From Dendrobates tinctorius (lineage: Eukaryota): a stretch of DNA of 64,000 nt. This document shows positions 3,001-57,187 of this stretch, piece by piece (positions within the stretch are counted from its first letter, which is position 1; every line of letters starts with the position of its first letter). The stretch lies in NCBI RefSeq assembly GCF_039654945.1, contig NW_027361806.1:27962001-28026000 (forward strand), in the 5' to 3' direction. A program made the translations under genes and the position numbers. The notes under the pieces were generated by a model that was given only the letters and a program-made list of their open reading frames with translations, ran no database searches and was not told the origin of the DNA.

Positions 3001-6000
3001 AGCTTTTTATCTGGGTACTTGATGTGACAATTTTTATATATACTTCATATACATAACATAGTGGTTTTGGGAAAGGGCATAATTTGCTACAAATTTATAT
3101 GTGACTGGTTCTACTGTGTGTGAGTGTTATGCATCTATTCAGACTGTCTGGACTTTCTACCTTTCCTCACATGCATATATGATTGTATAAATCTACTTTA
3201 CTGCATTCATGAAGATATTCTAAGCAAATGGATACAGGCCGTCTGGCCCTCTGTTTCTAATCTGTCGTCTTATAGGATGATATAGGAGATTAGGGATAGT
3301 CATCGCACGAGCGGGGGCGCCATTCTCGTATTTCTTTGGGTGCCAACCTCCGCACCTAGGTAGGTATTCAGATAGTCATTTTGTATACGGCCAGGTCACT
3401 CTTTTCTTCACATCGGCTGAGTGAAATTGTGATCAGATGGTAGCACGTATTATCAATTTTTATACATCTTCTTTATGTCCATTTCCCCCCTTTTTTTTCC
3501 GTTTTTTGAGGTTTTTGGGCTATAATAGTATTGTGCAGTTTTTAACTGCTATGATTCAGGTTTTTCTGACCACATGATTGGATTGGCAGATTCAGCTGGT
3601 TAGATTTGGTTTGACTGTTATACCTTATCTCTTTCCAGCAATACAATAGCCCGTTTTTTACTAGGCTTTATAATATGGGACATCTGTGCAATTTTATATT
3701 GTTATTTTTGTACTTAATAAAAGTTATATTTTAATAGGGTTTTTTTCAGTTAGTCGGTTATAGGTAACCCTTGTTCACATTATACTTGTTAGTTGAAAGA
3801 GGGAGACACGAAAGGTGGGTGGTAACAGTTGTCCTGATTGTATGGACCAGCCATAATGTTAGGTGTGTAACAGTACAGACACAGAGGGCTAATGGATGCA
3901 TAAAGCATGTGGGAACATGATGCGGAGAACCTGGTTATGGTAAAACTTTTGGCTGTGCCACACAGGGATAGATTAGGTTAATGTGTTGAGGCGGTAGGCC
4001 AGTCTGAATAAATGAGTTTTCAGGGCACGCTTAAAATTGTGGGGATTGGGGACTACTCGTATTGACCTGGGAAGTGCATTCCAAAGAATTGGCGCGGCAC
4101 ATGTAAAGTCTTAAAGACGGGAGTGGGAGGTTCTGATTATTGAGGATGCTAACCTCAGGTCATCAGCAGAACGGAGGGCGCGGGTAGGGTGGTATACTGA
4201 AACAAGGGAGGAGATGTAGGGTGGTGCTGAGCCATGGAGGGCTTTGTGGGTGAGGGTAATAAGTTTGTACTGGATTCTGGAATGGATGGGTAGCCAGTGT
4301 AATGACTGGCACAAGGTAGAGTCATCGGTGTAACGATTGGCGAGGAATATGATCCTGGCTGCAGCATTCAAGACAGATTGGAGAGGGGAGAGTTTGGTAA
4401 GAGGGAGACCGATTAGAAGAGAGTTACAATAGTTGAGACGAGAATGAATAGGAGAAACAGTAAGAGTTTTTGCGGAGTCAAAAGTAAGAAAAGGTCGAAT
4501 TCTAGAAATGTTTTTGAGGTGCAGATGACAAGAGCGAGCCAGTGATCGGATGTGGGGGGCAAAGGAAAGCTCGGAGTCAAGTATGACCCCAAGACAGCGG
4601 GCATGTTGCTGGGGAGTAATAGTGGAACCACACACGGAAATGGCAATGTCGGGTATAGGTACATTAGTAGAGGGAGGAAACAAGGAGTTCAGTCTTTGAC
4701 AGGTTCAGTTTCAGATATAGTGAGGACATGATGTTAGACACAGCGTTTAGACAATCGCCGGTGTTTTCTAGAAAGACTGGCGTGATGTCAGGGGAAGCGT
4801 ATAATTGGGTGTCATCAGCATAGGGATGGTACTGGAAACCCTACTGATTGTTTTACCAATAGGGGCAGTGTACAAGGAGAAGAGGAGGGGGCCTAGAACC
4901 GATCCTTGAGGAACCCCAACAGTAAGGGGAAGGTGAGAGGAGGAGGAACCAGCAAAAGATACAGTAAAGGAGCGGTCAGAGACATAGGAGGAGAACCAGG
5001 AGAGAACGGTGTCCTTGAGGCCAATGGAACGGAGCATAGTGAGGAGGAGCTGATGATCCACAGTGTCGAATGCTGCAGAGAGATCCAAGAGAATTAGCAT
5101 GGAGTAATGACCTTTAGATTTAGCTGTTAGTAGATCATTAGAGACTTTAGTGAGGGCAGTTTCAGTAGAGTGTAAAGAGCGGAAACCGAATTGGAGAGGG
5201 TCAAGAAGAGAGTTATCAAAGAGATAGCGGATAAGACGGGAGTGGACCAGGCGTTCCAGGAGCTTAGAGATGAAGGGAAGATTAGAGGCAGGTCTATAGT
5301 TAGCGGCACAGTTTTGGTCGAGGGATGGTTTTTTAAGTAGTGGATGTATGACAGCATGCTTAAATGAGGAGGGAAAGATACCAGAAGAGAGAGGTTAAAT
5401 ATTTTAGTTAGGTGAGGGGTGACAGCAGGGGAAAGGGACTGGAGGAGATGTGACAGAAATGGGTCACTGGTGCAAGTGGTTGGGCGAGAAGATGCAAGGA
5501 GCCTGCTTACTACTTCTTCTGTGACTGGTTCAAAATCAGAGCGTGAGCTAGATGCAGTGGGGGAGGGAGGACAGTGCATGGAATGAGGTGATTGGGAGAT
5601 AATTTCCTGTCGGATCTGGTCAATTTTTTCTTTGAAGTAATTGGCCAGATCGTCAGCTCGGAGCTCTGTGGTTGGGGCCTGTACTCTTGGGTTGAGTAAA
5701 GAATGAAAAGTGTCAAAGAGACGTTTCGGGTTATTGGACAGTGAGGTGATGAGAGTGTTGAAATAGGTTTGTTTGGAGAGGTGAAGGTCAGTGTTGTATG
5801 TTCTAAGCATAAACTTATAATGGATGAAATCTTCGTGTAGGTTGGATTTTCTCCACAGACGTTCGGTGCACCTGGAGCACCGCTGCAGGAAACGTGTTTG
5901 CACCGTGTGCCAGGGTTGTCGCCGTCTGCGTTGTGGTGTTCTATTTATAGGGGGTGCAAATTCATCTAGGGCACTTTGAAGTGTTTCATTGTAATGCTTC

Positions 6001-9000
6001 AATGCAGAATCAGGACATGAGAGGGAGGAGATAGGGGCCAATGAAGACCGCAAGTTCTTCATAAGTTTCTGGGTGTTAATGGCCTGTGTGTTTCTATAAG
6101 TCTGGACAGTGGGGGTGACCTGAGCAGCCTGGCAGTTCTTAATAGAGAATGAAAGAAGATTGTAGTCAGAGAGCGGGAGAGGGGAGTTTGCAAAATCATC
6201 CACTGCACAAAGCCGAGAGAAGACCAAGTCGAGGGAGTTTCCGTCTTCATGCGTTGGAGAATTAGTAAGCTGCGAAAGGCCAAACGAGGAGGTTAGAGAT
6301 AAAAGGTGAGTAGCAGATGGTGAGAGGGGAAGAGCAATGGGGATGTTGAAATCTCCCATGATGAGGGAAGGGATGTCACAGGAGAGAAAATGTGGAAGCC
6401 AAGTGGCAAAATGATCCAGGAACTGATGGGAGGGGCCGGGGGGACGATACACCACCACCACTCGCATGGAGAAGGGGGTGTAGAGTATGACGGCATGGAC
6501 CTCAAAAGAAGGGAAGACTAGTGAGGGTAGTTCAGGGATAACCTGAAAGGTACATTTTGGTGATAGGAGCAGATCAACGCCTCCACCTGCTCTATTGTCT
6601 GATCTTGGGGTATGAGAGAAGTGTAATCCCCCGTATGAAAGAGCAGCAGCAGCGGTAGTGTCTGACTGCTGGATCCAGGTTTCAGTAAGAGCCAGGAGGT
6701 TAAGAGAATTAGAAAGGAAAAAGTAATGAATGAACGAGAGTTTGTTACACACTTACTCATAGACTTGTATTAGCGACGGATTGTGATGGATGGCCTCACG
6801 TTTCGTCCGTCGTTCACTGGATCTGTCAAAATTTTGTGTCCGGCAGCCGGAGACAACGGACAAAGTAACGATTATTGTGTCCATCGAAAAATCAGACAGC
6901 GACGGATCCAGCGCCGTCAAGATGAAAGCCTATGGGAGCAGGATCCGTCACTGTCCGTCAAATGACAGATGCCAGCGACGGATCCGGTTTTTTAACTGAG
7001 CAATGAGCATGATCCTGACAGGTTACAACACCAAAGAAAGAATAGATATATACACATAGAATATATACACTCACTGGCCACTTTATTAGGTACACCTGTC
7101 CAACTGTGTGTTAAGACTTAATTTCTAATCAGCCAATCACATGGCGGCAACTCAGTGCATTTAGGCATGTAGACATGGTCAAGACAATCTCCTGCAGTTC
7201 AAACCGAGCATCAGTATGGGGAAGAAAGGTGATTTGAGTGCCTTTGAACGTGGCATGATTGTTGGTGCCAGAAGGGCTGGTCTGAGAATTTCAGAAACTG
7301 CTGATCTACTGGGATTTTCACGCACAACCATCTCTAGGGTTTACAGAGAATGGTCCGAAAAAGAAAAAAAATCCAGTGAGCGGCAGTTCTGTGGCCGGAA
7401 ATGCCTTGTTGATGCCAGAGGTCAGAGGAGAATGGGCAGACTGGTTCGAGCTGATAGAAAGGCAACAGTGACTCAAATTGCCACCCGTTACAACCAAGGT
7501 AGGCAGAAGAGCATCTCTGAATGCACAGTGCGTCGAACTTTGAGGCAGATGGGCTACAGCAGCAGAAGACCACACTGGGTACCACTCCTCTCAGCTAAGA
7601 ACAGGCATCTGATGGCTACTTTCAGCAGGATAATGCGCCATGTCATAAAGCTCGAATCATCTCAGATTGGTTTCTTGAACATGACAATGAGTTCACTGTA
7701 CTCAAATGGCCTCCTCAGTCACCAGATCTCAATCCAATAGAGCATCTTTGGGATGTGGTGGAACGGGAGATTCGCATCAGGGATGTGCAGCCGACAAATC
7801 TGCGCCAACTGTGTGATGCCATCATGTCAATATGGTCCAAAATCTCTGAGGAATGCTTCCAGCACCTTGTTGAATCTCTGCCACGAAGAATTGAGGCAGT
7901 TCTGAAGGCAAAAGGGGGTCCAACCCGTTACTAGCATGGTGTACCTAATAAAGTGGCCAGTGAGTGTATATACACATGTCATTGAGACACACACACACAC
8001 ATATATATATTTATAGTTTATAGAGTTCTACATAGAATAGCCGCTGAATCAATCGCCGTCTTCTGTAAAATCATTCCCGAACCCGACATGAAATGACACA
8101 TGGTTACATACAGTAAACCATGTCATAGAATGGTAGAGTTGGAAGGGACCTCTTGGGTCATCTGATCCAACCCCCCTGCTCAATGCAGGATTCGCTAAAT
8201 CATCCCAGACAGATGTCTGTCCAGCCTCTGTGCGATGTCATAGCCAAACGATTTATATATGTCAGTGTTTAATCAATTTAGTAGTTTGTGTTAGGAAAAA
8301 TTTGGAACTCTAGGGGTTAAATGTAAGGCTATAATCGTGGAAAAATATAGCGTGGGCTCCCGCAGTAATTTCTCCACCAGAGAGGGAAAGCCAATGAGTG
8401 ACAGCAGATATTAATAGCCTAGAGAGGGACCATTGTGTTTGCCCCCCCCCCGCCGGCTAAAAAAAATCTGCCCCCAGCCACCCCAGAAAAGATGCACCTT
8501 TTCTGGCCCTCAGCCTCTCTATTCCACTGTCTTTAGCGGTGGCTAATGGTTTTATGTCACCTTGCTATTGGAAGGTGGCATTAAGCCGGGCTAATAATGG
8601 AGAGGTTCAATAAGACACCTATCCATTATTAACCCTAGAATAGAAAAGGGTTAAAAAAAGACACACACATTAATTAAAAATATTTTAATGATATAAATAA
8701 AGTTTTTGACCAAATTTATTATGCTGCCAATCCAAAAGAATCCCTTGTTCTGTTAAAAAAAAAACAAAAAAAAACAAACACCAATATCCATACCTCACCG
8801 CCGTTCAGTCAGGTCCCCTGCTGCAATCCACCACAAGGGATTAGCTAGTTTACAACGGGGACCAGTGCTAATGCTACTGGCCCCGCTGTAAACCACTACA
8901 GAATGAATGAATTCATCTCTGCGCAGGTGCCACGACTGACAGAGATGAACTGATTAGTGTGGGAAAGTTTCTGAATTTTTTCCCACGCTGTTAGTTCACC

Positions 9001-30348: not shown

Positions 30349-30423
30349 TCACAGCTTGGATGAAGCTTTTCTCCTCACGGTGCCGGTGATGTTTCCATAG
30401 GGTTTATCTGAGGGCAGCAGGAT
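30349..30423 (-). CDS. UOX: UOX exon 8 ([24 protein letters not shown])
   Basis: cgcag acceptor, homology, TGA stop. Confidence 0.95.
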   Translation of the reverse strand: MLLPSDKPYGNITGTVRRKASSKL

Positions 30424-33400
30424 CTGCGGAGACATTGGATATCATCATGTAATGCCGCCATCGTGTACAATCACATGAAGCCGCCATCAATCTGCTACCG
30501 ATCTACAATCTCATGCCGCCCTCGTTCTCTGTACAGTGACATATATTGGGGTGACGCCCCATAGCTGCGGCCGGTGAACGCTGCGGCAGACGGTTCTCAT
30601 TACCTCATCTTTGTTGTTCAGGCCAAACTTGCTCATGTCGATGGTGAAATAATGTTTGTTCGGTAAAATAACCTCAATTTCTTCAATCTGCAATGAACAG
30701 AAGTGATTATAGGAACAAGGCCCCACGAGTAGCACGGCTAATGCAAGAACAGTTCCCAAAGCTGACACCTGCCCCCGATCACAGAGGACGGGACGAGTAA
30801 CGGAGGACGGGACGAGTAACGGAGGACGGGGCGAGTAACGGAGGACGGGACGAGTAACGGAGGACGGGGCGAGTAACGGAGGACGGGGCGAGTAACGGAG
30901 GATGGGGCGAGTAACGGAGGATGGGGCGAGTAACGGAGGACAGTATGAGTAATGGAGGACAGTATGAGTAATGGAGGACGGGACGAGTAACGGAGGACGG
31001 GACGAGTAACGGAGGACGGGGCGAGTAACGGAGGACGGGGCGAGTAACGGAGGACAAGACGAGTAGCGGAGGACGGGACGAGTAACGGAGGACGGGGCGA
31101 GTAACGGAGGACGGGGCGAGTAACGGAGGACGGGACGAGTAGCGGAGGACAGTATGAGTAATGGAGGACGGGACGAGTAATGGAGGACGGGACGAGTAAT
31201 GGAGGACGGGACGAGTAACGGAGGACGGGACAAGAAACGGAGGACAAGATCCTTAAAGGAGGTCAGGATGGCGGCACAGATTCAGACGTGACATAAATGG
31301 CCCAAAAATCTTAATCAGCTGAAACTTTTTCGCCACATACACTATGGTCAACTGAAAATGCAGGAGGTCTCTGTCCACAACCCTGTAACCCCCAACCCAG
31401 ACCCCTCTGTCCCCTACAGAAAAGAGGAAGGAGAATGGATGGATAAAGAACAGATGAGTCTGCACAATCAGATGGTGAGAAATTAGCTGAATGTCAGTCC
31501 CATAGTCCCGCGCTCCCCATCCTACGGTCCCGCGCTCCCCATCCTACGGTCCCGCGCTCCCCATCCTACGGTCCCGCGCTCCCCATCCTACGGTCCCGCG
31601 CTCCCCATCCTACAGTCCCACGCTCCCCATCCCATACTTACCGTCCTATAGTCATGCCAACACGCCCTACAGTGACCATCCTATAGTTCTGTAGTTCCCG
31701 TCCTATAGCCCTGCAGTTCCTATCCCATAGCCCTGCAGTCCCCGTTCTATAGTCTTACAGTTACCATCCTATTATCCGGCAGTCGCCATCACTCAATCGT
31801 GGATGGTAAGTCTGCGGAGTATAAGCCCTCTGAGGACGGACCCCATAACTTTGTATTAGACAATCCGCTGCACAGACAGAAGAAATTAATCGATGCCAAA
31901 TTGTGAACTTCTGGGATAAAACAATGTTGTTCTCGGAGACGGTGGATCCCTTTGATATCACACCGGACCACCTCCACTTACGACACTTCTGACCATTGCA
32001 CATATGGAGACCCCGGCCGTGTGTCCCCCGCTCCGTACCTGAGGGACGCTGCTCAGGCCCAGCACCTGGATGTCGTACAGCGTCTTCTGGACGGAGGGAG
32101 AATATTCTCCTTTGTCGTATGGACCAGAAAATTTGTCAAGGATGATTTGTTTCACGGTTCCCCTGGAGAAACAAGAAGACGTTGGTCAGATGATCGTCAC
32201 CCGGTGCTGGATTCATGATTGGGTATATGATCATTAGAGCAGGGACTAATGAGGACATACATCCATCCTGCACATCAGGAGCACCTAAGGCCCACCGAGC
32301 CTAGGGCCATGCTATCTACTGAGGACCTAACAATGTAAGGAGCGGTGGGGCACACAATCGCCCACCGCTCCCGTTCACACGAAGATCTTCGGAGCCCTAG
32401 TTCTTGGGATTTGTGGGAGACCGAGTATTCATACCCCAAGTTATCGGGAGGCTGTCCCTAACCAATGGATGGGGTGTAACTTCTAAACTTGAGCATGCCC
32501 TTGCAACTCGCTAGCAGCCGCTGCAGGGGCCTGTAGTGTAACATGGCAGCCGTTCGATAGAGTGGACCTCTCTTCTGGCTCATAAAAGGGACCACCCTCT
32601 ACGATGAGAAAATCCCAGGGCTGTGCCAGACACAAGGCCACTTACCAGATGGCATCAAAGTCGAGCCCCTTGTAGGAGCTGAACTTCCATTTGCAGTTGA
32701 CGATGGTGGAGAAGCAGCGGTCCTTCGCCTCGGGGAGTGTTGTGTATTGATCTTTTATAAAACCTTCGAATCCGGACTGTGTCGTCTTCAGAAGGCGCAG
32801 ATCTTTAATTCCTGAGTAAACAACGGGCTGACCTGCGGAGGAGACACCAAAATAACAACATCAGATGAAGGTGCGGACCCTACAACACCCGGGCAAGGAC
32901 AACCAGACTTGTTCCTGACGGAGTTCTCTTACCTCCTCGCTCCTGTTCTACTTCACAGAAATGGGTGCCCTCGGAGGAATAGATAAAGGCATGAACGTGG
33001 TCCACTCCGTCCTGCACCCGAAACAGAGGCATGAAGAGAGAAATGCATGAATTCCCTTATGTAATCAGATGGAAAACATCTGTTCTTTCTGGCAGAGTTA
33101 CCAAGCTTGTGCACGCATCACTTTTTCCCATTGGTATACAGGGAGCTCCCCCTAGTGGTGACTGCAGAAAGGATCTCATCATGTATCTCTGTATACAGGG
33201 AGCTCCCCCTAGTGGTGGCTGCAGACAGGATCTTATCATGTATCGCTATATACAGGGAGCTCCCCCTAGTGGTGACTGCAAACAGGATCTTATCATGTAT
33301 CTCTGTATACAGGGAGCTCCCCCTAGTGGTGGCTGCAGACAGGATCTTATGTATCTCTGTATACAGGGAGCTCCCCCTAGTGGTGACTGCAAACAGGATC

Positions 33401-36400
33401 TTATCATGTATCTCTGTATACAGGGAGCTCCCCCTAGTGGTGGCTGCAGACAGGATCTTATCATGTATCTCTGTATACAGGGAGCTCCCCCTAGTGGTGG
33501 CTGCAGACAGGATCTTATCATGTATCTCTATATACAGGGAGCTCCCCCTAATGCTTCAGCAAAGCATTTGACAAAGTCTCTCATACAATCCTTATTGAAA
33601 AAATGACTAAGTATGGAATGGACAAGGCAACTGTTAGGTGGATTCATAACTGGCTTAGTGATCGGACCCAAAGAGTGGTCGTAAATGGCTGTACATCCAG
33701 TTGGAAGAATGTCTCAAGTGGGGTACCACAGGGCTCTGTCCTGGGCCCTGTATTGTTCAACATCTTTATCAACGATTTAGATGAAGGAATTGAGGGTAAA
33801 CTGATTAAATTTGCTGATGACACAAAGCTAGGAGGGATAGCTAATACTAGAGAAGAGAGAGAGAGGATTCAAAAAGATTTAAATAAACTGGAGAAGTGGG
33901 CACCAACTAACAGAATGGTTTTTAACAGGGAGAAATGCAAAGTACTACATCTGGGCAATAAAAATGAAAAAAGCATATATAGAATGGGAGGAATAGGGCT
34001 AAGTGACAGCACATGTGAAAAAGACTTGGGTATACTAATAGATCACAGACTGAATATGAGTCAACAGTGTGATGCAGCAGCAAAAAAGGCAAATGCAATT
34101 CTAGGATGTATTAACAGAAGCATACAGTCTAGATCACGTGAAGTCATTATTTCCCTCTACTCCTCTTTGGTCAGACCTCATCTGGAATATTGTGTCCAGT
34201 TTTGGGCACCACATTTTAAAAAAGACATCAACAAACTGGAGCAAGTTCAGAAAAGAGCGACCAGAATGGTGACCGGTCTGCAAACCCTGTCTTATGAGGA
34301 AAGGTTGCAGGATTTGGGAATGTTTAGTTTGCAAAAGAGAAGACTGAGAGGAGACTTAATAGCTGTCTACAAATATCTAAAGGGCTGTCACATTGTAGAA
34401 GGATCAACTTTATTCTCATTTGCACAAGGAAAGACTAGAAGCAATGGGATGAAACTGAATGGGAAGAGACACAGATTAGATATTAGAAAAAACTTTTTGA
34501 CAGTTAGAGTGATCAATGAGTGGAACAGGCTGCCACGAGAAGTGGTGAGTTCTCCTTCAATGGAAGTCTTCAAACAGAGGCTGGACAGACATCTGACTGG
34601 GATGATTTAGCGAATCCTGCTTTGAGCAGGGGGTTGGACCAGATGGCCCAGGAGGTCCCTTCCAACTCTACGATTCTATGATTGGGTTTTTTTTTTTTCT
34701 ATGATTGGTGACTGCAGACAGGATCTTATCATGTATCTCTGTATACAGGGAGCTCCCCCTAGTGGTGGCTGCAGACAGGATCTTATCATGTATCTCTGTA
34801 TACAGGGAGCTCCCCCTAGTGGTGGCTGCAGACATGATCTTATCATGTGTCTCTATATACAGGGAGCGCCCCCTAGTGGTGGCTGCAGACAGGATCTTAT
34901 CATGTATCTCTGTATACAGGGAGCTCCCCCTAGTGGTGGCTGCAGACAGGATCTTATGCATGTCTGTATACAGGGAGCTCCCCCTAATGGCGACTGTTCT
35001 GCTTTATTTTTATTTTTGTAGTGGATTTTGAAATTTTTCAGAATGATAAAGCCTTTGACCAAGTATCTACAAATACCTTTTTAAAGCGTCTCCAGGGGGC
35101 TTCTTCGATGTCGGTCTGCACTCTTGTCACATGACTGAAGGATGTGAGGAAATGATTACAAATCTCCAGAGAGAAGTCCTCAATGGTGTTTATCTATGCA
35201 ATAAAACAAGATATAAAGTCATTGTTGCAGATGACGGCCGGGAGACGATATAATCCGACAGTCAAAGGCGACAGAAATGGAATAAATTGGGCCCTGAGCG
35301 TTAATAATCCCCCTGTGGTGAAAAATATAGGTGTGGAATGTCCTGGCTGCCACCAGAGGGCGCTAGCATACACATTCAATAACCACAAATAAATATGAAT
35401 GATTCTCACCCCTTTGGTCTTGGCCAGGGCGTAGACGGTATTCTTGATGGTATCGGTGGGAATGATGTCGCTGTTATCGCCCTCCAGGTAATCCTTCTTG
35501 GAGCTCAAGGTGAGCTGCACCGAGGCCTCGATCTCCCGGATGTAATGCCTCTCGCCGTCTCTCCGGATCTGCAGAACTTTCACAGCGTTCTTCCCATAAC
35601 CCGTCCGGACAAACTCCACGTCCTGGAGAACAAAAATCAAAAGCAAATTGTCATGTCAGTGATGAGAATCCGATGCTGCACTTCGTGGGGTCGTCCCGAT
35701 ATACGGACCTCGTAGAGACTCAGAGAAAGCGAAGAAACGTGGGTGATATCCGGCAGCCCCCCGCTTCTAACGTGCAGTTTTTATTCCGAGGGTCTTGTAG
35801 TACGCAGAGAGCAGGGGCGTCTGTACAGGGATTCTGCATGGGGATTCTGTACAGGGCGTCTGTATGGTGGGTCTGTATGTATGGGGATTCTGTATGGGGT
35901 GTCTGTATGTACGGGGATTCTGTACGGTGGGTCTGTATGTATGGGGATTCTGTATGGGGATTCTGTACAGGGCGTCTGTATGGTGGGTCTGTATGTATGG
36001 GGATTCTGTATGGTGGGTCTGTATGTATGGGGATTCTGTATGGTGGGTCTGTATGTATGGGGATTCTGTATGGGGCGTCTGTATGTATGGGGATTCTGTA
36101 TGGTGGGTCTGTATGTATGGGGATTCTGTACGGTGGGTCTGTATGTATGGGGATTCTGTATGGTGGGTCTGTATGTATGGGGATTCTGTACGGTGGGTCT
36201 GTATGTATGGGGATTCTGTATGGGGCGTCTGTATGTATGGGGATTCTGTACGGTGGGTCTGTATGTATGGGGATTCTGTATGGGGCGTCTGTATGTATGG
36301 GGATTCTGTATGGTGGGTCTGTATGTATGGGGATTCTGTACGGTGTCTGTATGTATGGGGATTCTGTATGGGGCGTCTGTATGTATGGGGATTCTGTATG

Positions 36401-47961: not shown

Positions 47962-49067
47962 CCTCCGATCTGTGGCCGGAGCGGAGCAATGCCAGCTGTG
48001 TGTGGAGGGCTCCGGTCGGGGGCAGCTATTGTACGCGGACTTCGGGCCAATCCGAGTCTGTTTGTTCGGTTGAAGAGTAACCTCAACTCGGGGGTCACAG
48101 ATCTCTGATCGAGGTCAGTTATTTGTTAACTAGAAGTTTGTCTCCTCTCACGGACATTTTCAAGCCCAAAAAAAAAATCAACAAATGTTTCGGCCGTTCC
48201 GCATCGATCGCGCAGGCGGCTTCTCAATAAATGCCGCCATGACTTTAAACTTTGGCGTTAAAAAATAAATGGGAGATTATGAGGCTGAAATATCGTTTCC
48301 TGGACCCCGCGTCTAAAGATCCGCCCGATCCTTCAGAACGCACAATTTTCCACTTTAGTTTTTCTCTGTGAGTTTTCTGCGGGACGACTTGTACTTTCTA
48401 ATGACACCTTTAATTCTATCACTTATTAGGCTGGAAAACGGGAAAAAGTCCACGTGATGAAATAGAGAAAAACCGCGATTCCCCCGCTGCTCGATGCGTT
48501 TTCCTTTTGGGCCCTTCATTGTGGGTGACGATTCCCCCGGTCAGCGCCGTTACACCGACACCGGAGGTGGGGTGAATACATCACTGCTGATTTGTACTGC
48601 ACTTTTTGGGGAGGTTCGATTTTGGACCTTTGCAGAAGTGGAAATACCAAATATGTTTATTTTTGGATTGGGGAAGGGAGGGGCAAAGTAACAGGTTTTA
48701 TTTTTGTAATATTTAAACACTTTTTTGTTTTAGTCGCCGCAGGGCCAGTGGCTCTGGGATCAGTTGTGCGATCCTCTGCAATGACTCGGCGTCGTCCGCT
48801 CCTCTGCAGCAGAGGCTTCCATAGATTGTGGGGTCCACAGCGATCATTTATCATCTATTCCATGAAATGTTTTGTGTGCCTGGCCCTTTAACAAGTTTGT
48901 GGCCGGTCAGACACGTGGACGCCCAGTAACAGAACGTCGCTGGGATATTTCCACTTTCCCGGCAGTGAACGACGAGATCACATGATTTCACTTCCTGCTG
49001 CGGAGCTGAACATGAGAGGCCGGGACTTCTCCTTTACAGCCATTCTTGAACCATTCGGGGGGGGATC
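47962..49067. promoter_or_regulatory. Divergent UOX/DNASE2B promoter region
   Basis: Lies between two head-to-head ATGs. Contains CCAAT at 48047-48051, an HNF1-like GTTATTTGTTAAC at 48118-48130 and an HNF4-like CGGACTTCGGGCC at 48036-48048. Confidence 0.7.
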
Positions 49068-49168
49068 ATGTCCGGCCGCGGCTTGCTGTCTGCGCTCTGT
49101 ATGATCGGCGTCTCTCTGGTCACATGTGAGATCGCGTGTCGCAATGAAGGTGGAGATCCCGTAGACTG
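49068..49168 (+). CDS. DNASE2B: DNASE2B coding exon 1 (signal peptide + IACRNEGGDPVDW)
   Basis: ATG...GAC TG|gtaggt. Phase 2 fits the G at 56562 to make Trp. Confidence 0.92.
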
Positions 49169-52100
49169 GTAGGTGATGAACACTGATCGTTAGATTCACC
49201 TCTCTACTTGGTATAAGGCTGCATTCACACTTTGTGGCATCATGATTTAAAAACCGCTGCAAAATCTGTGCAGTTCTATCGCAGCTAAATAACGAGGCTG
49301 CAATGTGTGAACGCAGCTGTAAGAGCACGGACAGATCCGGAGGAGCTGCGGCGCTTTCTCCATGCAATGGATGGCCGAGGCCCCAATGCAGCACAGCCCT
49401 CCTGAATGGGGGCATCTGTTGCGCTGAAATCTGGGAAACTGTGCTGCAGCCCTCCTTGTACTCCTGTGGCCGGGGACCCTCTATTCTCTGGGGCCCCGGA
49501 GGACAGACCCCCCTACCCCTCTTATCAATCAGACCCGTTCCTGAATCCAGCGGACTATAGATCCCAGTACAATAACGGCCCCCTGTAGTGATACGATGTG
49601 TCAGCACTGGGAGTTCAAGATGTGCAATGGGGGTGGCTATATACAGAAGCAGTACATGGCCACACCCCCAGTGCACTTCCAAGCTAATTTGCATGTGGTT
49701 TCAATACTTGATTTCTCAGCGCCGGCACATCGGACCGGAATCAGGTTTATTGTACTGGGACCGATGTAGACATCCTGCTAGTTTTGTAGGGAAACCCTCA
49801 GACAGCCCCCCATATACGGCACCTGGAGCCAGTCAGTCCTATATGTGCCGGCAGCCACGTTACAGGGGTCTGGACCCATCTGTGCCTAGTGTGAACAGTC
49901 ACCTGCATGCGCTTGATGGCCGCCTCACGTGGCTGAAGTTGTGTCTGAGTCTTCTGGGCTCAGCCTCCAACATTTGTAATAAACACATCCGCCACCGGAC
50001 CTCACGCTACTGGCTGCAGCCCCCCGTGTCCTGTGGGGGAGTAGGAGGCCGGACCCTAAACTTTATGGCAGAGTCTTAAAGGATTTAACCTGATGGGATC
50101 TTTCTACATACAGTGCAGAGGAGAAAGCCGTTTATTTTTGCAGAGATTTTAATTAGTAAAAAATAAAATATACAAAATGTAAAAAAAAAAGCCCCCACAC
50201 GCAAGAATCCAGGGGGGACGATGGAGGGGGTCCCAGCGCACAGAGGAGTCCGGGGGGGGGAGGGTTGAGACGACGATGGAGGGGGTCCCAGCGCACAGAA
50301 GAGACCGGGGGGAGCGGGATGATGACGGCGGTCCCAGCGCACAGAAAAGAGTCCTGGGGGCGGGGACGATGACGGAGGTCCCAGCGCACAGAAGAGTCCT
50401 GGGGGCGGCGACTATGACGGCGGTCCCAGCGCACAGAATACAGAGGAGTCCAGGTAGGACGATGTCAGCCTGCAGGGGTCCTCTTGTCAATTGGCGGGGG
50501 TCTGCCAGTCAGTTGGGGCACTGGACGTCACTCGGCGGGGGCTCCGGGCATCATTCGGCGGGGGCTCCGGACGTCACTCGGCGGGGGCTCCGGGCATCAG
50601 TTGGCGGGGGATCTGTACGTCACTCGGCGGGGGCTCCGGGCATCAGTTGGCAGAGGCTCTGGACGTCACTCGGCGGGGGTACCGGGCATCAGTCGGCGGG
50701 GGCTCCGGGCATCACTCGGCGGGGGCACCGGGCATCAGTTGGGGGCACCGAGCATCAGTTGGCAGAGGCTTCGGGCATCAGTCGGCGGGGGCACCGGGCA
50801 TCAGTTGGTGGGGGCTCTGGACGTCAGTCGGCGGGGGCACCGGGCATCAGTTGGAGGGGGCTCTGGACGTCACTCGGCGGGGGCACCGGGCGTCAGTTGG
50901 CAGAGGCTCTGGACGTCACTCGGCGGGGGCTCTGGGCGTCACTCGACGGGGGCACCGGGCATCAGTTGGCGGGGGCTCTGGACGTCACTCGGCGGGGGCG
51001 CCGGGCATCAGTTGGCGGGGGCTCTGGACGTCACTCGGCGGGGGCGCCGGGCATCAGTTGGCGGGGGCTCTGGACGTCACTCGGCGGGGGCGCCGGGCAT
51101 CAGTTGGCGGGGGCCCGGAGGATCTTCACCTCGTCCCGCGGCCGGTCCTGGCTGTCCGTCTCCACCATCCCCAGCCGGTTCAGGGTCCCCAGGCCCTGAC
51201 ACACCCGCCCGAAGATCGTGTGCTTGCCGTCCAGCCACTGCGCCGGGGCCAGGGTAAGGAAGAACTGGCTGCCGTTGGTGTCGGGCCCGGAGTTGGCCAT
51301 GGCGAGGATCCCGGCCCCGGTGAACTTCAGCTCCGGGTGCAGCTCGTCGGAGAAGTGCTTCCCGTCATAGATGGAGCCTCCGCCGCGCCCGGTGCCCGTG
51401 GGGTCCCCGCCCTGCACCATGAAGTCCTTGATGATGCGGTGAAACTTGGTGCCGTTGTAGTAGCCGCGGCGGGAGAGCTCGGCGAAGTTCCTGCACGTCC
51501 GCGGGGCGTGCTCCCAGTACAACTCCACCGTGATCGTGCCCATGCTGGTGTCTAGACTGACGGTGGCCGGCCGCCAATTGTCCGGTGGGATCCCCGCCAT
51601 CCTACACACGAGTGACCGGGGAGCGCCGTCGCGGGTACACACTTCCGGTCTCCAAGCCTCGTTCTCAGACTCTCACTGACGCAGTCCGCCCGTGGCTCAA
51701 CTTCCGGTATCAATAAAGTTACTTTTGACTATGGCGGTAGCTCGGGGTCGATTGCTCATGTCAACCAATCAGAACGCTTTTTACATTTTAAAAACTCTTT
51801 TGAATGAATAATAAGCAGTAATGTGATTGGTTGCTGTGATCTGCGCTGAAACTCCTTCTTGCCGGACACCGGGAAGAGTCATCAAACCTGCCGGAAGGCA
51901 AAGTAATGACTACAACAGGAATTCCGGGATCTGAGGGGTTTATACAAAGTGGGAGATGGGGAAATGGTGTGAAAAAGTGTCATCAGGCCCCAAGTAATAA
52001 AAACGCCATTCATGAACAATGAGGTGTCAGTTTAGGGGGTCTCAGATCTTTATCAGTTTTAGGGGGTCTCAGATCTGTATCAGTTTTAGGGGGTCTCAGA

Positions 52101-55100
52101 TCTGTATCAGTTTTAGGGGTCCGGTCTGGGATCTGTATCAGTTTTAGGGGTCCGGTCTGAGATCTTTATCAGTTTTAAGGGTCCGGTCTGAGATCTTTAT
52201 CAGTTTTAGGGGTCCGGTCTGTGATCTTTATCAGTTTTAGGGGTCCGGTCTGGGATCTATATCAGTTTTAGGGGTCCGGTCTGGGATCTATATCAGTTTT
52301 AAGGGTCCGGTCTGGGATCTATATCAGTTTTAAGGGTCCGGTCTGGGATCTATATCAGTTTTAAGGGTCCGGTCTGGGATCTATATCAGTTTTAGGGGTC
52401 CGGTCTGGGATCTATATCAGTTTTAAGGGTCCGGTCTGGGATCTATATCAGTTTTAGGGGTCCGGTCTGGGGTGTATATCAGTTTTAAGGGTCCGGTCTG
52501 AGGTCTATGTCAGTTTTAGGGTCCGGTCTGGGATCTGTATCAGTTTTAGGGGTCCGGTCTGGGATCTTTATCAGTTTTAGGGGTCCGGTCTGGGATCTAT
52601 ATCAGTTTTAGGGGTCCGGTCTGGGATCTTTATCACTTTTAAGGGTCCGGTCTGGGATCTATATCAGTTTTAGGGGTCCGGTCTGGGATCTATATCAGTT
52701 TTAAGGGTCCGGTCTGGGATCTTTATCAGTTTTAAGGGTCCGGTCTGGGATCTATATCAGTTTTAGGGGTCCGGTCTGGGGTGTATATCAGTTTTAAGGG
52801 TCCGGTCTGAGGTCTATGTCAGTTTTAGGGTCCGGTCTGGGATCTGTATCAGTTTCAGGGGTCCGGTCTGGGATCTTTATCAGTTTTAGGGGTCCGGTCT
52901 GGGATCTATTATCAGTTTTAAGGGTCCGGTCTGGGATCTTTATCAGTTTTAAGGGTCCGGTCTGGGATCTATATCAGTTTTAGGGGTCCGGTCTGGGATC
53001 TTTATCAGTTTTAGGGGTCCGGTCTGGGATCTTTATCAGTTTTAAGGGTCCGGTCTGGGATCTATATCAGTTTTAGGGGTCCGGTCTGGGGTGTATATCA
53101 GTTTTAAGGGTCCGGTCTGAGGTCTATGTCAGTTTTAGGGTCCGGTCTGGGATCTGTATCAGTTTTAGGGGTCCGGTCTGGGATCTTTATCAGTTTTAGG
53201 GGTCCGGTCTGGGATCTATATCAGTTTTAAGGGTCCAGTCTGGGATCTTTATCAGTTTTAGGGGTCCGGTCTGGGATCTTTATCACTTTTAAGGGTCCGG
53301 TCTGGGATCTAAATCAGTTTTAGGGGTCCGGTCTGGGATCTATATCAGTTTTAAGGGTCCGGTCTGGGATCTATATCAGTTTTAGGGGTCCGGTCTGGGG
53401 TGTATATCAGTTTTAGGGGTCCGGTCTGAGATCTTTATCAGTTTTAGGGGTCCGGTCTGGGATCTATATCAGTTTTAGGGGTCCGGTCTGGGATCTTTAT
53501 CAGTTTTAAGGGTCCGGTCTGGGATCTATATCAGTTTTAAGGGTCCGGTCTGGGATCTATATCAGTTTTAGGGGTCCGGTCTGGGATCTTTATCAGTTTT
53601 AAGGGTCCGGTCTGGGATCTATATCAGTTTTAGGGGTCCGGTCTGGGATCTATATCAGTTTTAAGGGTCCGGTCTGGGATCTATATCAGTTTTAGGGTCC
53701 GGTCTGGGATCTTTATCAGTTTTAGGGGTCCGGTCTGGGATCTTTATCAGTTTTAAGGGTCCGGTCTGGGATCTATATCAGTTTTAGGGGTCCGGTCTGG
53801 GATCTTTATCAGTTTTAGGGGTCCGGTCTGGGGTGTATATCAGTTTTAAGGGTCCGGTCTGAGGTCTATGTCAGTTTTAGGGTCCGGTCTGGGATCTGTA
53901 TCAGTTTTAGGGGTCCGGTCTGGGATCTTTATCAGTTTTAAGGGTCCGGTCTGGGATCTATATCAGTTTTAGGGGTCCGGTCTGGGGTGTATATCAGTTT
54001 TAAGGGTCCGGTCTGAGGTCTATGTCAGTTTTAGGGTCCGGTCTGGGATCTGTATCAGTTTTAGGGGTCCGGTCTGGGATCTTTATCAGTTTTAGGGGTC
54101 CGGTCTGGGATCTATATCAGTTTTAAGGGTCCGGTCTGGGATCTTTATCAGTTTTAGGGGTCCGGTCTGGGATCTTTATCACTTTTAAGGGTCCGGTCTG
54201 GGATCTATATCAGTTTTAGGGGTCCGGTCTGGGATCTATATCAGTTTTAAGGGTCCGGTCTGGGATCTTTATAAGTTTTAAGGGTCCGGTCTGGGATCTA
54301 TATCAGTTTTAGGGGTCCGGTCTGGGGTGTATATCAGTTTTAAGGGTCCGGTCTGAGGTCTATGTCAGTTTTAGGGTCCGGTCTGGGATCTGTATCAGTT
54401 TTAGGGGTCCGGTCTGGGATCTTTATCAGTTTTAGGGGTCCGGTCTGGGATCTATTATCAGTTTTAAGGGTCCGGTCTGGGATCTTTATCAGTTTTAAGG
54501 GTCCGGTCTGGGATCTTTATCAGTTTTAGGGTCCGGTCTGGGATCTGTATCAGTTTTAGGGGTCCGGTCTGGGATCTTTATCAGTTTTAGGGGTCCGGTC
54601 TGGGATCTATTATCAGTTTTAAGGGTCCGGTCTGGGATCTTTATCAGTTTTAAGGGTCCGGTCTGGGATCTTTATCAGTTTTAGGGGTCCGGTCTGGGAT
54701 CTTTATCAGTTTTAGGGGTCCGGTCTGGGATCTATATCAGTTTTAAGGGTCCGGTCTGGGATCTATATCAGTTTTAAGGGTCCGGTCTGGGATCTTTATC
54801 AGTTTTAGGGGTCCGGTCTGGGATCTATATCAGTTTTAGGGGTCCGGTCTGGGATCTTTATCAGTTTTAGGGGTCCGGTCTGGGGTGTATATCAGTTTTA
54901 GGGGTCCGGTCTGGGATCTTTATCAGTTTTAGGGGTCCGGTCTGGGATCTTTATCAGTTTTAGGGGTCCGGTCTGGGATCTTTATCAGTTTTAGGGGTCC
55001 GGTCTGGGATCTTTATCAGTTTTAGAGGTCCGGTCTGGGATCTTTATCAGTTTTAGCGGCCGGTCTGGGATCTTTATCAGTTTTAGGGGTCCGGTCTGGG

Positions 55101-55719
55101 ATCTTTATCAGTTTTAGGGGTCCGGTCTGGGGTGTATATCAGTTTTAGGGGTCCGGTCTGGGATCTTTATCAGTTTTAGGGGTCCGGTCTGGGATCTATA
55201 TCAGTTTTAGGGGTCCGGTCTGGGATCTTTATCAGTTTTAGGGGTCCGGTCTGGGATCTTTATCAGTTTTAGGGGTCCGGTCTGGGATCTATATCAGTTT
55301 TAGGGGTCCGGTCTGGGATCTTTATCAGTTTTAGGGGTCCGGTCTGGGATCTTTATCAGTTTTAGGGGTCCGGTCTGGGATCTTTATCAGTTTTAGAGGT
55401 CCGGTCTGGGATCTTTATCAGTTTTAGCGGCCGGTCTGGGATCTTTATCAGTTTTAGGGGTCCGGTCTGGGATCTTTATCAGTTTTAGGGGTCCGGTCTG
55501 GGGTGTATATCAGTTTTAGGGGTCCGGTCTGGGATCTTTATCAGTTTTAGGGGTCCGGTCTGGGATCTATATCAGTTTTTTTGGGTCCGGTCTGGGGTCT
55601 TTATCAGTTTTAGGGGTCCGGTCTGGGGTATATCAGTTTTTGGCATCTCTATCAGTCTAGGGGGTCTGTTCTGGGCTCTGTATCCGCTCTGGGGTCTGTA
55701 TAAGTTCAGGGGATCATGG

Positions 55720-55762
<43 letters not shown>

Positions 55763-57187
55763 TTAGTTTTTCATAGACTTTGATACATATATATCTAATC
55801 TGATTATATGGACTGTGATTGCCCTTATTTATTCTTATTTGATCACGTTTATGCTGCTTCTCCGCTTTGTTTTGGGCTTTTTTTTATTAATGTCTTGTTT
55901 TTTTGTTTTTTTTTGCACATTATTATTATTATACATTTATATAGCGCCATTTATTCCATGGCGCTTTACATGTGAAAAGGGGAAATATAGACAAGTACAA
56001 TAAACATGTGTAAGACAAAGGACACACAAGTACAGGAGGAGAGGGGACCCTGCCCGCGAGGGCTCACAGTCTACATTATCACCTTATTTACCAATACATA
56101 TGTATATCCCTCCATGGTGTGTGAAGCAGTATATAGAGAATGTTGTGGACTGACCTATATCCTTTATGGGTCGTCTCTTCTATGTCGATACATATATTTG
56201 GGACGTTACTCTTCTTTTTCGGTGCTTTATTATCAGTGATTTTTCAGAAGGGCCATTATCATTATTATAGATTTTCAGAGATATATGATCCCAGATTTCT
56301 CATTTTGATCGTATTAACGTCGAGATTTTTTGATGTGAATGAGGAAAGTGGAGCCAGTGGCTGAAAAAAGTTCTGCAACTTCTGTGCTAATTTGGAGATT
56401 TCCTCATAAGCAACCAAACAGGCTGTGAAAGCTGCACAGAGGTGCGACCTGAAGCCTCTCTGTCCTCATGGAATATCTATAATCGCGCCCCCTACTGTCA
56501 TGCACCATTTATTACACCGTTGACTTTTTTCACTTTTTCTTCTCTCTTTATATTTCCGTAGGTTTGTGATTTATAAGTTACCAATGCGTCTGATCAATGA
56601 GTCGTATGGACCAGGCCTGGACTATTTGTATCTCGACTCAAAGTCGCAGGGATGGCAAGTCAGCAAATTCCTCATCAACATGACCCAGGGGGCGATGGGG
56701 CGAGTGCTGGAGCAGCTCTACCAGTCATACAAGGTGAGCGGGATCTTATCGCATGTCTAAATATTCTACCAAACTCTTCAGGACCGGGCGTCACATACGT
56801 ACAAACTGCGATGTGCACCATGGGGCGGATGGGATGTTTGTGTCTGTAAATGGAATTCTGTGTAAACCCCCAGTGTAATTCTATGCAAATCGGGAGACAC
56901 GAAGCTGCATTGGCCCCAGCAGTCGGTATACAGCGTGTTATGGATAAATGCATTTTGGGAAGCCTTTAAAATTGAGCTAAGAAGCTGTAAATATGAAGGA
57001 AATGTCAGACTGACAGTGAAAAGTCAATGTGATGTGTGCGATGTTTCCTGAGATTTGTGCAGGGTTCTTGCATCTGACAATATTTTCTTATTTTCCTTCG
57101 TTCAGAGAAACGACACGGCATACATGTTATATAACGATTCTCCGCCGGGAAGGAACAGCTCCTTCACAGACAGAGGGCACTCCAAGG
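49068..57187 (+). CDS. DNASE2B: Deoxyribonuclease II beta, 5' partial, join(49068..49168,56562..56733,57106..57187,...)
   Basis: MSGRGLLSALCMIGVSLVTCEIACRNEGGDPVDW-FVIYKLP...GLDYLYLDS...LEQLYQSYK-RNDTAYMLYND...GHSKG: signal peptide, DNase II N-terminal motif and first HxK motif. Syntenic with UOX. Later exons were not found in the window. Confidence 0.93.
50131..50136 (-). terminator. Candidate PPIL1 polyadenylation signal AATAAA
   Basis: TTTATT on the + strand, preceded in the transcript by a U-rich tract (50150-50190). Confidence 0.65.
50210..50445. repeat. Degenerate tandem repeat (GACGATGGAGGGGGTCCCAGCGCACAGA core)
   Basis: About 5 copies. Confidence 0.8.
50500..51115. repeat. 23/46-bp GC-rich minisatellite overlapping the PPIL1 stop codon
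   Basis: Alternating GGGCATCAGTTGGCGGGGGCTCT and GGACGTCACTCGGCGGGGGCGCC subunits. Confidence 0.92.
51100..51600 (-). CDS. PPIL1: Peptidyl-prolyl cis-trans isomerase-like 1 (spliceosomal cyclophilin), intronless, 166 aa
   Basis: MAGIPPDNWRP...NFAELSRRGYYNGTKFHRIIKDFMVQGGDPTGTGRGG...LAMANSGPDTNGSQFF...WLDGKHTIFGRV...ETDSQDRP. Full-length open frame with strong Kozak gtaggATGG. Confidence 0.96.
   Translation of the reverse strand: MAGIPPDNWRPATVSLDTSMGTITVELYWEHAPRTCRNFAELSRRGYYNGTKFHRIIKDFMVQGGDPTGTGRGGGSIYDGKHFSDELHPELKFTGAGILAMANSGPDTNGSQFFLTLAPAQWLDGKHTIFGRVCQGLGTLNRLGMVETDSQDRPRDEVKILRAPAN
51601..51900 (-). promoter_or_regulatory. Housekeeping-type promoter of PPIL1
   Basis: CpG-rich. 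Two ACTTCCGGT ETS/GABP sites (51641-51649, 51700-51708), YY1-like ATGGCGG (51731-51737) and CCAAT boxes (51765-51769, 51826-51830). Confidence 0.7.
52025..55640. repeat. 31-bp minisatellite (TATCAGTTTTAGGGGTCCGGTCTGGGATCTT)n containing TTAGGG
   Basis: Tandem periodicity, about 3.6 kb, in DNASE2B intron 1. Confidence 0.97.
55720..55761. repeat. (TA)n microsatellite
   Basis: Seen directly. Confidence 0.95.
55920..56075 (-). mobile_element. L2-type 3' tail fragment
   Basis: (TAT)n...TATAGCGCC...GACCCTGCCCGCGAGGGCTCACAGTCTA resembles 441-620. Confidence 0.65.
56562..56733 (+). CDS. DNASE2B: DNASE2B coding exon 2
   Basis: Polypyrimidine tract and tag|G TTT GTG ATT TAT AAG...AAG|gtgagc. Confidence 0.95.
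57106..57187 (+). CDS. DNASE2B: DNASE2B coding exon 3 (first catalytic HxK)
   Basis: ttcag|AGA AAC GAC...CAC TCC AAG G|gtaagt. Confidence 0.95.

Follow-up and report, generated by a model that had tools for sequence, protein, structure and literature searches.

PPIL1 of Hyloid and Myobatrachoid Frogs as a Probable Ancient Orphan Retrogene Nested in DNASE2B

PPIL1 is a conserved spliceosome-associated enzyme, and its loss in humans leads to a severe disorder of brain development. The solved structure closest to the frog protein described here is that of human PPIL1 (2x7k; 313.7 bits, E = 3.4e-93, residues 1–163), for which 1xwn and the spliceosome entries 5mqf/5xjc are also available. The two proteins have the same length, share ~80% identity over residues 1–163 and possess a single Pro_isomerase domain with all catalytic residues. 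The frog gene differs in being intronless, in its GC3 of 0.95 and in its position, which is within DNASE2B and not the ancestral locus; the frog protein has one more Asp following SIY, as neobatrachians do, and a different set of last four residues.

Retrocopies that replaced their progenitors have been described as 'orphan' retrogenes, CHMP1B being an example (Ciomborowska et al. 2013, PMC3548309). Frog PPIL1 likewise copies a multi-exon housekeeping gene without its introns and is under strong purifying selection; as in the described cases, no parent is seen in the clade, as judged by annotation, and the gene has long been annotated under its ordinary name with its retrogene status unrecognised. 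What sets it apart is its restriction to a frog clade and the involvement of a core spliceosome-associated enzyme. No paper linking PPIL1 with a retrogene was found in a literature search. Functional retrogenes also have a higher GC content than the genes they derive from (Mordstein et al. 2020, PMC7181179). The frog retro copies similarly stand far above the parents in synonymous GC, within an intron of ~45% GC around PPIL1, but the shift is extreme (GC3 from 0.36–0.56 in intron-containing genes to 0.83–0.98 in retro copies) and the 3′ UTR holds GC-rich minisatellites besides. Biased gene conversion is a possible contributor to the shift.

The window, a stretch of 64,000 nucleotides of Dendrobates tinctorius DNA, contains the following features at this locus.

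49068..49168, plus strand: exon 1 of a DNASE2B-type DNase II gene, encoding a signal peptide and ending ...GGDPVDW; ATG at 49068, followed by GTAGGT
49169..56561, plus strand: DNase II intron 1 with GT...AG boundaries, host of the retrogene
50131..50153, minus strand: poly(A) signals, ATTAAA at 50153–50148 and AATAAA at 50136–50131
50140..51099, minus strand: PPIL1 3′ UTR, made up largely of GC-rich minisatellites (units of 46 bp at 50515–51119 and of 45/93 bp at 50272–50464)
51100..51600, minus strand: PPIL1 coding sequence, 166 codons plus TGA (reading frame, PPIL1 match, Pfam, RNA-like contigs with 0–2 mismatches)
51601..51791, minus strand: PPIL1 5′ leader (X1 contig 51093–51791, X2 contig 51029–51774; start site approximate)
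51641..51667, minus strand: block TGAGAACGAGGCTTGGAGACCGGAAGT, a KLF/SP-like box and an ETS site, shared with the parental 5′ region
51792..52037, minus strand: upstream flank with CCAAT boxes, conserved in dendrobatids only (Ranitomeya alignment); candidate acquired promoter
52038..55627, no strand: tandem array of ~116 copies of a 31-bp unit, directly upstream of the PPIL1 flank
56562..56733, plus strand: DNase II exon 2, preceded by AG and followed by GTGAGC; its peptide matches Pfam DNase_II at 7e-13

The initial annotation had read an intact single-exon PPIL1 gene on the minus strand at 51600–51100, and this reading is borne out. The frame (51600–51103, stop at 51102–51100) encodes 166 amino acids, matches human PPIL1 with E = 3e-93 and is identical in translation to the annotated protein P0129. 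The start lies in the strong Kozak context that had been noted (AGGATGG; A at −3, G at +4). Pfam Pro_isomerase (PF00160; 1.4e-52, residues 14–163) is the sole cyclophilin domain, the nearest database proteins all carry the name PPIL1, and other cyclophilins score lower (PPIL2 162 bits, PPWD1 155, CWC27/PPIL3 148, CypA 117). In an alignment of 19 sequences the catalytic columns are invariant, in agreement with the conserved active-site motifs reported earlier, and R55, F60, M61, Q63, A102, N103, F114, W122, L123 and H127 show no variation. The gene is predicted to encode a catalytically intact spliceosomal cyclophilin, since Arg55, Phe60, Gln63, Asn103, Trp122 and His127 are all kept. As a PPIL1 protein it would also be expected to bind SKIP/SNW1 and to take its place in activated spliceosomes. 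Plus-strand reading frames at 50276–51555 (257–354 amino acids) were rejected as coding, being stop-free readings of the GC-rich minisatellite.

Comparison with other frogs supports the retrocopy reading. The PPIL1 genes of Pelobates, Xenopus and four ranoids (Aquarana/Lithobates, Hyperolius, Gastrophryne) have four coding exons, with introns at codons 19 (phase 2), 71 (phase 1) and 94/95 (phase 1); none of these outgroups is intronless. These genes sit at loci without a DNase II gene as neighbour; in Hyperolius, for instance, PPIL1 lies between RPS10-like and seryl-tRNA-synthetase genes. The intronless copy, in contrast, is found antisense within the DNase_II gene also in Ranitomeya variabilis, Dendropsophus ebraccatus, Bufo gargarizans, Mixophyes fleayi and Pseudophryne corroboree, adjoining uricase at a locus unrelated to the parental one. 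All three parental introns are absent exactly, and seven frog species, belonging to the large groups Hyloidea and Myobatrachoidea, keep an intact reading frame. As the same intronless antisense copy occurs in both groups, its insertion would predate their split. A codon tree with its root on Pelobates and Xenopus unites the retro copies in a single clade, whose branching follows the species tree and whose long stem measures 0.64 substitutions per codon. The absence of a poly(A) remnant or target-site duplication, pointed out from the window alone, extends to the 3′ flanks of Bufo and Mixophyes, where none is recognisable either; for a very old event this is to be expected and does not disqualify an old retrogene.

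The PPIL1 retrocopy is under strong purifying selection. Pairwise dN/dS by NG86, which was used within each group because dS is saturated for retro-versus-parent pairs, is 0.08–0.15 among the retro copies and 0.06–0.09 among the parents. The maximum-likelihood codon model gives an omega of 0.032 for six retro copies versus 0.077 for five parents. Both estimates lie far below the value near 1 that would have spoken against a functional gene. The very GC-rich codons noted at the outset are likewise evident, with GC3 of 0.946 for the Dendrobates frame.

Expression is supported by RNA-like contigs that span ~51791 to 50140 and cover the reading frame and both UTRs; they come from two studies, with one further species besides. 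The runs (X1, X2, X21, X12) are RNA by our guess and are represented by contigs, which give coverage rather than strand, level or exact ends. In X1 and X2 the transcription unit is covered and the flanks are uncovered, the examined part of the intron at 49.2–50.1 kb being bare except for a short common repeat at 49661–49720. The depth of X21 is 40–54 over the PPIL1 unit versus ~5 beside it, and X12, the second species, has a contig of 98% identity. Over the 3′ UTR, contigs run from 50155 to 50553 in X2, from 50141 to 50552 in X21 (depth 40 versus ~5 beyond) and from 50322 to 50497 in X1. The high-depth contigs stop at 50141–50155, by the poly(A) signals; the AATAAA noted downstream is present at 50136 on the minus strand together with ATTAAA at 50153, and the 3′ end of the Bufo copy, which also carries AATAAA, can be aligned with this region.

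The 5′ region shows traces of the parent. The leader is conserved with Bufo to 51731 and farther with Ranitomeya. Its block TGAGAACGAGGCTTGGAGACCGGAAGT aligns at equal distance from the ATG between the retro copies and their intron-containing counterparts in Pelobates, Xenopus and Aquarana, and in the comparison of Mixophyes with the latter three none of 300 shuffles reached the score. The block is short (~25 nt), weak in Bufo and, in the 5′ alignment, absent from the Hyperolius and Gastrophryne genes. Parent and copy are homologous in the coding sequence and this short leader only, and no homology is recognisable between the 3′ UTRs of parental genes and retro copies. The ETS/YY1/CCAAT promoter of the initial annotation stands in part: the upstream sequence does contain CCAAT boxes, a GCCAT core and two CCGGAAGT sites, but contigs reach 51774–51791, so that at least part of the proposed promoter is transcribed in some molecules. 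The flank at 51792–52037 has no X1 contig and one low-depth X2 piece (51902–52037). Beyond it lies the 31-bp array, which has a homologous array in Ranitomeya variabilis (L001, ~6683–8972).

The two DNase II exons proposed to flank PPIL1 join in phase through the split codon TG|G, giving W, and a contig of X21 crosses the junction, exiting at the exon 1 donor and continuing into TTATAAGTTACCAATGCGTC, which is DNase II exon 2 sequence. Exon 1, conserved with Mixophyes (L006, 12787–12878), is separated from exon 2 by PPIL1 and is spliced to that exon, and the nested arrangement does not give way to a first exon downstream of PPIL1. The suggested three-promoter UOX/DNASE2B/PPIL1 unit was not established: UOX exon 2 lies at ~35.6 kb, 13 kb off, and a search for UOX exon 1 did not locate it. 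UOX was also considered as the host, with PPIL1 in its intron 1. The Dendropsophus UOX model begins downstream of PPIL1 while those of Ranitomeya and Mixophyes have first coding exons upstream, and since these upstream exons are mutually unrelated this host was rejected. They are treated here as read-through or alternative 5′ exons and not as the ancestral layout.

Two protein features had been ascribed to the retrogene. The extra D of SIYDGK is no peculiarity of it, as the 19-sequence alignment places this residue in all neobatrachian PPIL1 proteins including those of intron-containing ranoid genes; being common to the latter, the insertion is older than retroposition. The altered C-terminus (RAPAN*) is real, but it is dendrobatoid-specific rather than generic to the retrogene, being shared by Ranitomeya, Phyllobates and Anomaloglossus. 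The final codons and the stop fall within the first unit of the 46-bp minisatellite.

The fate of the parent was approached through annotated proteomes, with a protein search that scored the 8000 candidates sharing most words. When all frog PPIL1 clusters were enumerated, each of 15 hyloid/myobatrachoid proteomes contained one PPIL1 protein, and ranoids, pelobatoids and pipids had exactly one each, of the intron-containing kind. From the single protein in each of the 15 it follows that the intron-containing parent was probably lost in Hyloidea and Myobatrachoidea, a conclusion with an annotation basis, which is blind to a pseudogenised or unannotated parent. The earlier suggestion that the copy replaced its parent thus has indirect support only.

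Taken together, these results make it very probable that the Dendrobates copy serves this frog as its working PPIL1 gene and that it is an ancient orphan retrogene. A processed pseudogene with a chance open frame, read only within DNASE2B pre-mRNA, is scarcely credible. The intronic site means that unstranded contigs could in principle derive from pre-mRNA, yet the unit is covered while the neighbouring intron is left bare save for the repeat, contig ends coincide with a poly(A) signal, and the pseudogene reading is effectively refuted by omega of 0.03 and by a frame that has stayed intact in seven species on both sides of a very deep split. Loss of introns in place, or duplication at the DNA level with no RNA intermediate, could appeal to the lack of a poly(A) tail and target-site duplication; this origin is highly improbable in view of three introns removed exactly with the frame unchanged, the unrelated locus and the restricted homology to the parent.

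The remaining alternatives concern number and age. An intron-containing parent might persist in the Dendrobates genome, either missed by annotation or not included in the protein collection, making the retrogene an extra functional copy, and the single-copy count does come from a protein search rather than whole-genome DNA. We consider this quite improbable, because 15 independently annotated genomes have one PPIL1 each and other frog groups have one of the other kind, and because the retro omega does not exceed that of sole-copy parents, which does not suggest redundancy. Insertion on the neobatrachian stem before Ranoidea, with Ranoidea losing the retrocopy and Hyloidea and Myobatrachoidea losing the parent, would suit a source mRNA that had the neobatrachian Asp and the GGGSIYDGKH signature common to ranoids. 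It is unlikely, as it requires one more loss than insertion after that split, and no annotated ranoid proteome has a second PPIL1.

For the preferred reading, an orphan retrogene inserted after the separation from Ranoidea, the following history may be proposed. The mRNA of a four-exon neobatrachian PPIL1, with the extra Asp of SIYDGKH already present, would have been reverse-transcribed and inserted antisense into DNASE2B intron 1, ~2 kb from exon 1. Shared structure and position would date the insertion before the Hyloidea/Myobatrachoidea split, which frog timetrees put probably more than 100 million years ago. Homology shows that the copy brought along 85 nt or more of the parental 5′ region, the KLF/SP-like box and the ETS site among them; these bases may give it promoter activity. 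The present transcript would be unspliced and ~1.65 kb long, from ~51.79 kb to the ATTAAA at ~50.15 kb. Synonymous sites would later have moved to extreme GC, which fits the known tendency of intronless genes of long standing to depend on GC-rich sequence for their expression but could also stem from biased gene conversion, and the intron-containing original would then have been lost in the hyloid/myobatrachoid clade. GC-rich minisatellites seem to have arisen later and independently just past the stop codon in dendrobatids and Bufo, the dendrobatoid one probably rewriting the last four or five codons with the fold untouched. A bolder version, possible but on balance doubtful, holds that the copy came from a transcript begun upstream of the usual start, so that the parental core promoter was carried in and was functional on landing, and that the event belonged to an early-neobatrachian period in which several essential multi-exon genes were replaced outright by self-sufficient retrocopies. 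If true, one of the replaced genes makes a component of the intron-removing machinery itself.

The finding bears on the replacement of essential genes by RNA-derived copies and how such copies get promoters, as well as on why long-lived intronless genes turn GC-rich. It affects inference of orthology and synteny and the design of knock-out and expression studies in hyloid frogs, and the shared insertion is a clean rare-genomic-change marker that unites Hyloidea with Myobatrachoidea and leaves Ranoidea out. The data indicate that these two groups, both large among living frogs, depend on a PPIL1 retrocopy whose surroundings differ, whose codons are extremely biased towards GC and whose 3′ UTR is full of repeats.

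The initial annotation had proposed an intact, intronless PPIL1 gene, and this is borne out by an open frame of 166 codons (window 51600-51103, minus strand) with the start context AGGATGG and a TGA stop, in a window free of N stretches. The encoded protein is made up of one cyclophilin domain (Pfam Pro_isomerase, 1.4e-52). Among solved structures human PPIL1 comes closest (313.7 bits, E 3.4e-93, residues 1-163), and the other cyclophilin subfamilies score far below PPIL1 (PPIL2 162 bits, CypA 117). Alignment with 18 vertebrate PPIL1 proteins revealed unvarying cyclophilin catalytic positions. The protein matches exactly the annotated protein P0129 of a public assembly. Among named proteins it is most similar to the PPIL1 of Ranitomeya, Phyllobates and Anomaloglossus, which makes its bearer a dendrobatoid poison frog.

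Coding features around PPIL1 in the window
49068-49168, plus strand: DNase II exon 1, with ATG at 49068 and a signal peptide, ending in ...GGDPVDW and followed by GTAGGT
56562-56733, plus strand: DNase II exon 2, preceded by AG at 56561, beginning FVIYKLP..., which completes the split Trp codon, and followed by GTGAGC
30408-35622, minus strand: uricase coding exons, with a coding peptide at ~35607 and the C-terminal ...SSKL stop at ~30408

The read data employed here are Logan contigs, which come without strand or depth information, from runs guessed to be RNA: X1 and X2 of one study, X21 of another and X12 of a second species. An X21 contig follows the genomic sequence up to the donor of exon 1 and from there switches to TTATAAGTTACCAATGCGTC, the exon 2 sequence, and so the 49168-to-56562 junction is in use. 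Together with the split Trp codon, this spliced contig upholds the proposed joining of the two exons across PPIL1, and PPIL1 is nested antisense in intron 1 of the DNase II gene. The exon 2 peptide matches Pfam DNase_II (7e-13). The uricase tail, ...SSKL, resembles a peroxisomal-targeting signal; its 36-aa exon 2 peptide is by itself below Pfam significance, and uricase (UOX) exon 1 was not located in the window. Gene calls place uricase beside the DNase II gene in other frogs as well, and this synteny marks the host as the presumed DNASE2B.

Several side observations concern this neighbourhood. The uricase models of Ranitomeya and Mixophyes have a first coding exon that lies upstream of PPIL1 and shares its strand (locus L001 of Ranitomeya variabilis 3209-3267, MLSAAQTSGQEESAEMQRQ; Mixophyes locus L006 9446-9475, MEHLKKMKLK). 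These exons are without relation to each other, and the Dendropsophus model begins downstream of PPIL1; possibly they are read-through or alternative 5′ exons across the retrogene. Low-depth X12 contigs at 48090-48240 and 48791-49074, with a 16-nt deletion at 48904, lie immediately before the start codon region of DNASE2B, extend 6 nt into it and may represent the DNASE2B 5′ UTR or a divergent transcript. At 49661-49720 in the DNASE2B intron, 33-67 nt are matched at 90-95% by many unrelated contigs of all four runs, with contig depth up to 126, which gives this segment the look of a piece of some abundant dispersed repeat or transcribed element.

The loci that encode PPIL1 were compared across frogs. 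Exact exon reconstruction gave four coding exons for PPIL1 of Pelobates fuscus, Xenopus laevis, Aquarana, Hyperolius riggenbachi and Gastrophryne carolinensis, separated by introns at codons 19 (phase 2), 71 (phase 1) and 94/95 (phase 1). In these frogs and Lithobates the gene extends over 1.7-15 kb; the Lithobates structure was obtained from tblastn matches to separate exon pieces only. There is no DNase II gene at any of these PPIL1 loci, and in Hyperolius PPIL1 lies between genes for an RPS10-like protein and seryl-tRNA synthetase. PPIL1 is one exon of 501-504 bp in Ranitomeya variabilis, Dendropsophus ebraccatus and Bufo gargarizans (Hyloidea) and in Mixophyes fleayi and Pseudophryne corroboree (Myobatrachoidea), and in all five it lies on the opposite strand within a spanning DNase_II gene with uricase next door. 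Moreover, on both sides of PPIL1 the two DNase II exons of the window (1 and 2) can be aligned with their counterparts in Bufo and Mixophyes. The same intronless exon at the same antisense site in both superfamilies adds up to a single insertion at one site, inherited by Hyloidea and Myobatrachoidea. A codon tree with Pelobates and Xenopus at its root unites all retro copies in one clade, borne on a long stem, and otherwise matches the species tree. The possibility that PPIL1 is ancestrally intronless was also considered; the outgroups Pelobates and Xenopus have four coding exons. As a separate observation, Bufo gargarizans carries an inverted partial copy of the retrogene (residues 111-167; locus L002 8171-8350), 1.65 kb upstream of the intact gene, with 72% protein identity to Bufo PPIL1 and 89% DNA identity to window 51240-51112.

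The extra Asp in SIYDGK, previously taken as a peculiarity of the retro copy, does not hold as such. GGGSIYDGKH is present in PPIL1 of all Neobatrachia, including the intron-containing ranoid genes, whose exon 3 is 72 nt vs 69, and GGASIY-GKQ is found in non-neobatrachian frogs, axolotl, coelacanth and mammals. Since SIYDGKH is common to retro copies and ranoid parents, the source mRNA was already of neobatrachian type, which dates the retroposition between the Asp insertion and the Hyloidea/Myobatrachoidea split.

Among the frog PPIL1 clusters returned by the protein search, all 15 hyloid or myobatrachoid species have one PPIL1 each (the window's species, two Ranitomeya, Phyllobates, Anomaloglossus, two Bufo, Eleutherodactylus, Dendropsophus, Engystomops, Hyla, Rhinoderma, Leptodactylus, Mixophyes and Pseudophryne); Dendropsophus has two entries, one from the chromosome and one from a 37-kb haplotig. 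The count is likewise one each, of the intron-containing kind, in ranoid, pelobatoid, pipid and other early-branching frogs. The suggestion that the copy replaced its parent thus finds good but indirect support, and the parental gene was probably lost in Hyloidea/Myobatrachoidea, as judged from a count of annotated proteins to which a decayed or unannotated parent is invisible.

The frame is intact in 7/7 intronless species examined. Pairwise dN/dS (NG86) is 0.08-0.15 among retro copies vs 0.06-0.09 among parents, and the maximum-likelihood omega under a GY+F3X4 codon model is 0.032 for six retro copies vs 0.077 for five intron-containing genes; these values are not near 1, the figure that a processed pseudogene was expected to give. 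Contigs of X1 (51093-51791) and X2 (51029-51774) cover the ORF and 5′ leader with 0-2 mismatches and further pieces cover the 3′ UTR (X1 50322-50497; X2 50155-50553). As the PPIL1 unit is covered and its flanks carry no X1 or X2 contigs, bar the short common repeat at 49661-49720, this was taken as a transcript-assembly pattern. X21 contigs have a depth of 40-54 on the unit vs ~5 beside it, in the same run as the spliced DNASE2B junction, and an X12 contig over the ORF is 98% identical. The high-depth 3′ contigs stop at 50141-50155, at ATTAAA (50153-50148) and just before the AATAAA (50136-50131) that had been noted downstream; this stretch aligns with an AATAAA-bearing 3′ end in Bufo. The contig extents and the 3′ ends at poly(A) signals thus give an unspliced transcript of ~1.65 kb, as far as RNA-like unstranded contigs indicate.

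The block TGAGAACGAGGCTTGGAGACCGGAAGT (window 51667-51641; GGAGACGGAGGCGTGGAACGCGGAAGT in Mixophyes) precedes the ATG by 40-85 nt in 6/6 retro copies. It recurs equally far from the start codon in Pelobates (GAGGCGTGGAACGC identical to Mixophyes), Xenopus and, partly, Aquarana; for Mixophyes against these three, 0/300 shuffles score as high locally as the real sequences, and the aligned positions agree. In comparisons with Hyperolius and Gastrophryne the block is weak or missing. This homology argues that the copy brought along 85 nt or more of parental 5′ sequence, with a KLF/SP-like box (CCACGCC) and an ETS core; the sequence may be 5′ UTR only or may include a working core promoter. Further upstream, hyloids have in common TATTCAAA(A/T)G(T/C)AACTTTATT and a CCAAT box, absent from the myobatrachoids and parents compared and presumably gained at the new site. 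Of the ETS/YY1/CCAAT promoter proposed earlier, the ETS core and CCAAT box are present, but some motifs lie inside contigs reaching 51774-51791 and are therefore part of the transcript in some molecules at least.

The very GC-rich codons reported initially are real: GC3 is 0.83-0.98 in six retro copies vs 0.36-0.56 in five parents. The GC-rich, CpG-rich stretch is limited to 50.2-51.7 kb, in a DNASE2B intron of ~45% GC. Functional retrogenes exceed their parents in GC content, and a high GC content aids expression of unspliced mRNA (PMC7181179); biased gene conversion is a possible alternative cause of the rise. Directly at or after the stop, GC-rich minisatellites differ in three hyloid lineages:

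Minisatellites 3′ of PPIL1
window 50272-51119: 46-bp unit
Ranitomeya L001 10501-10750: ~21-bp unit
Bufo L002 10504-10860: 37-bp unit

No minisatellite follows the Mixophyes stop. The differing units suggest that repeats arose more than once, and apparently independently, in the 3′ UTR of this one retrogene. Open frames of 257-354 aa on the plus strand at the minisatellite were rejected as repeat artefacts. The altered C-terminus is genuine but common to dendrobatoids, whose last codons and stop (…GCC AAC TGA) fall within the first repeat unit; their tail is RA(P/S/N)A(N/T) vs RAYPQG in other hyloids, and residues 1-163, the entire fold, are unaffected. Apart from these, an array of the 31-bp unit GGTCTGGGATCTTTATCAGTTTTAGGGGTCC (~116 copies, 93% matches) at 52038-55627 adjoins the PPIL1 flank on its upstream side and takes up half of DNASE2B intron 1. 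Ranitomeya variabilis has a homologous array in the corresponding position (L001 ~6683-8972), which indicates an old dendrobatid satellite.

Retrocopies that took over from their progenitors were termed orphan retrogenes by Ciomborowska et al. (PMC3548309). The PPIL1 copy resembles them in its strong purifying selection and long annotation under an ordinary gene name and, with parent loss read from annotated proteins, it is probably one of them. The literature searched returned no paper on PPIL1 together with "retrogene". The case is of interest because a component of the spliceosome is here a retrogene and because a parental 5′ block came along with it.
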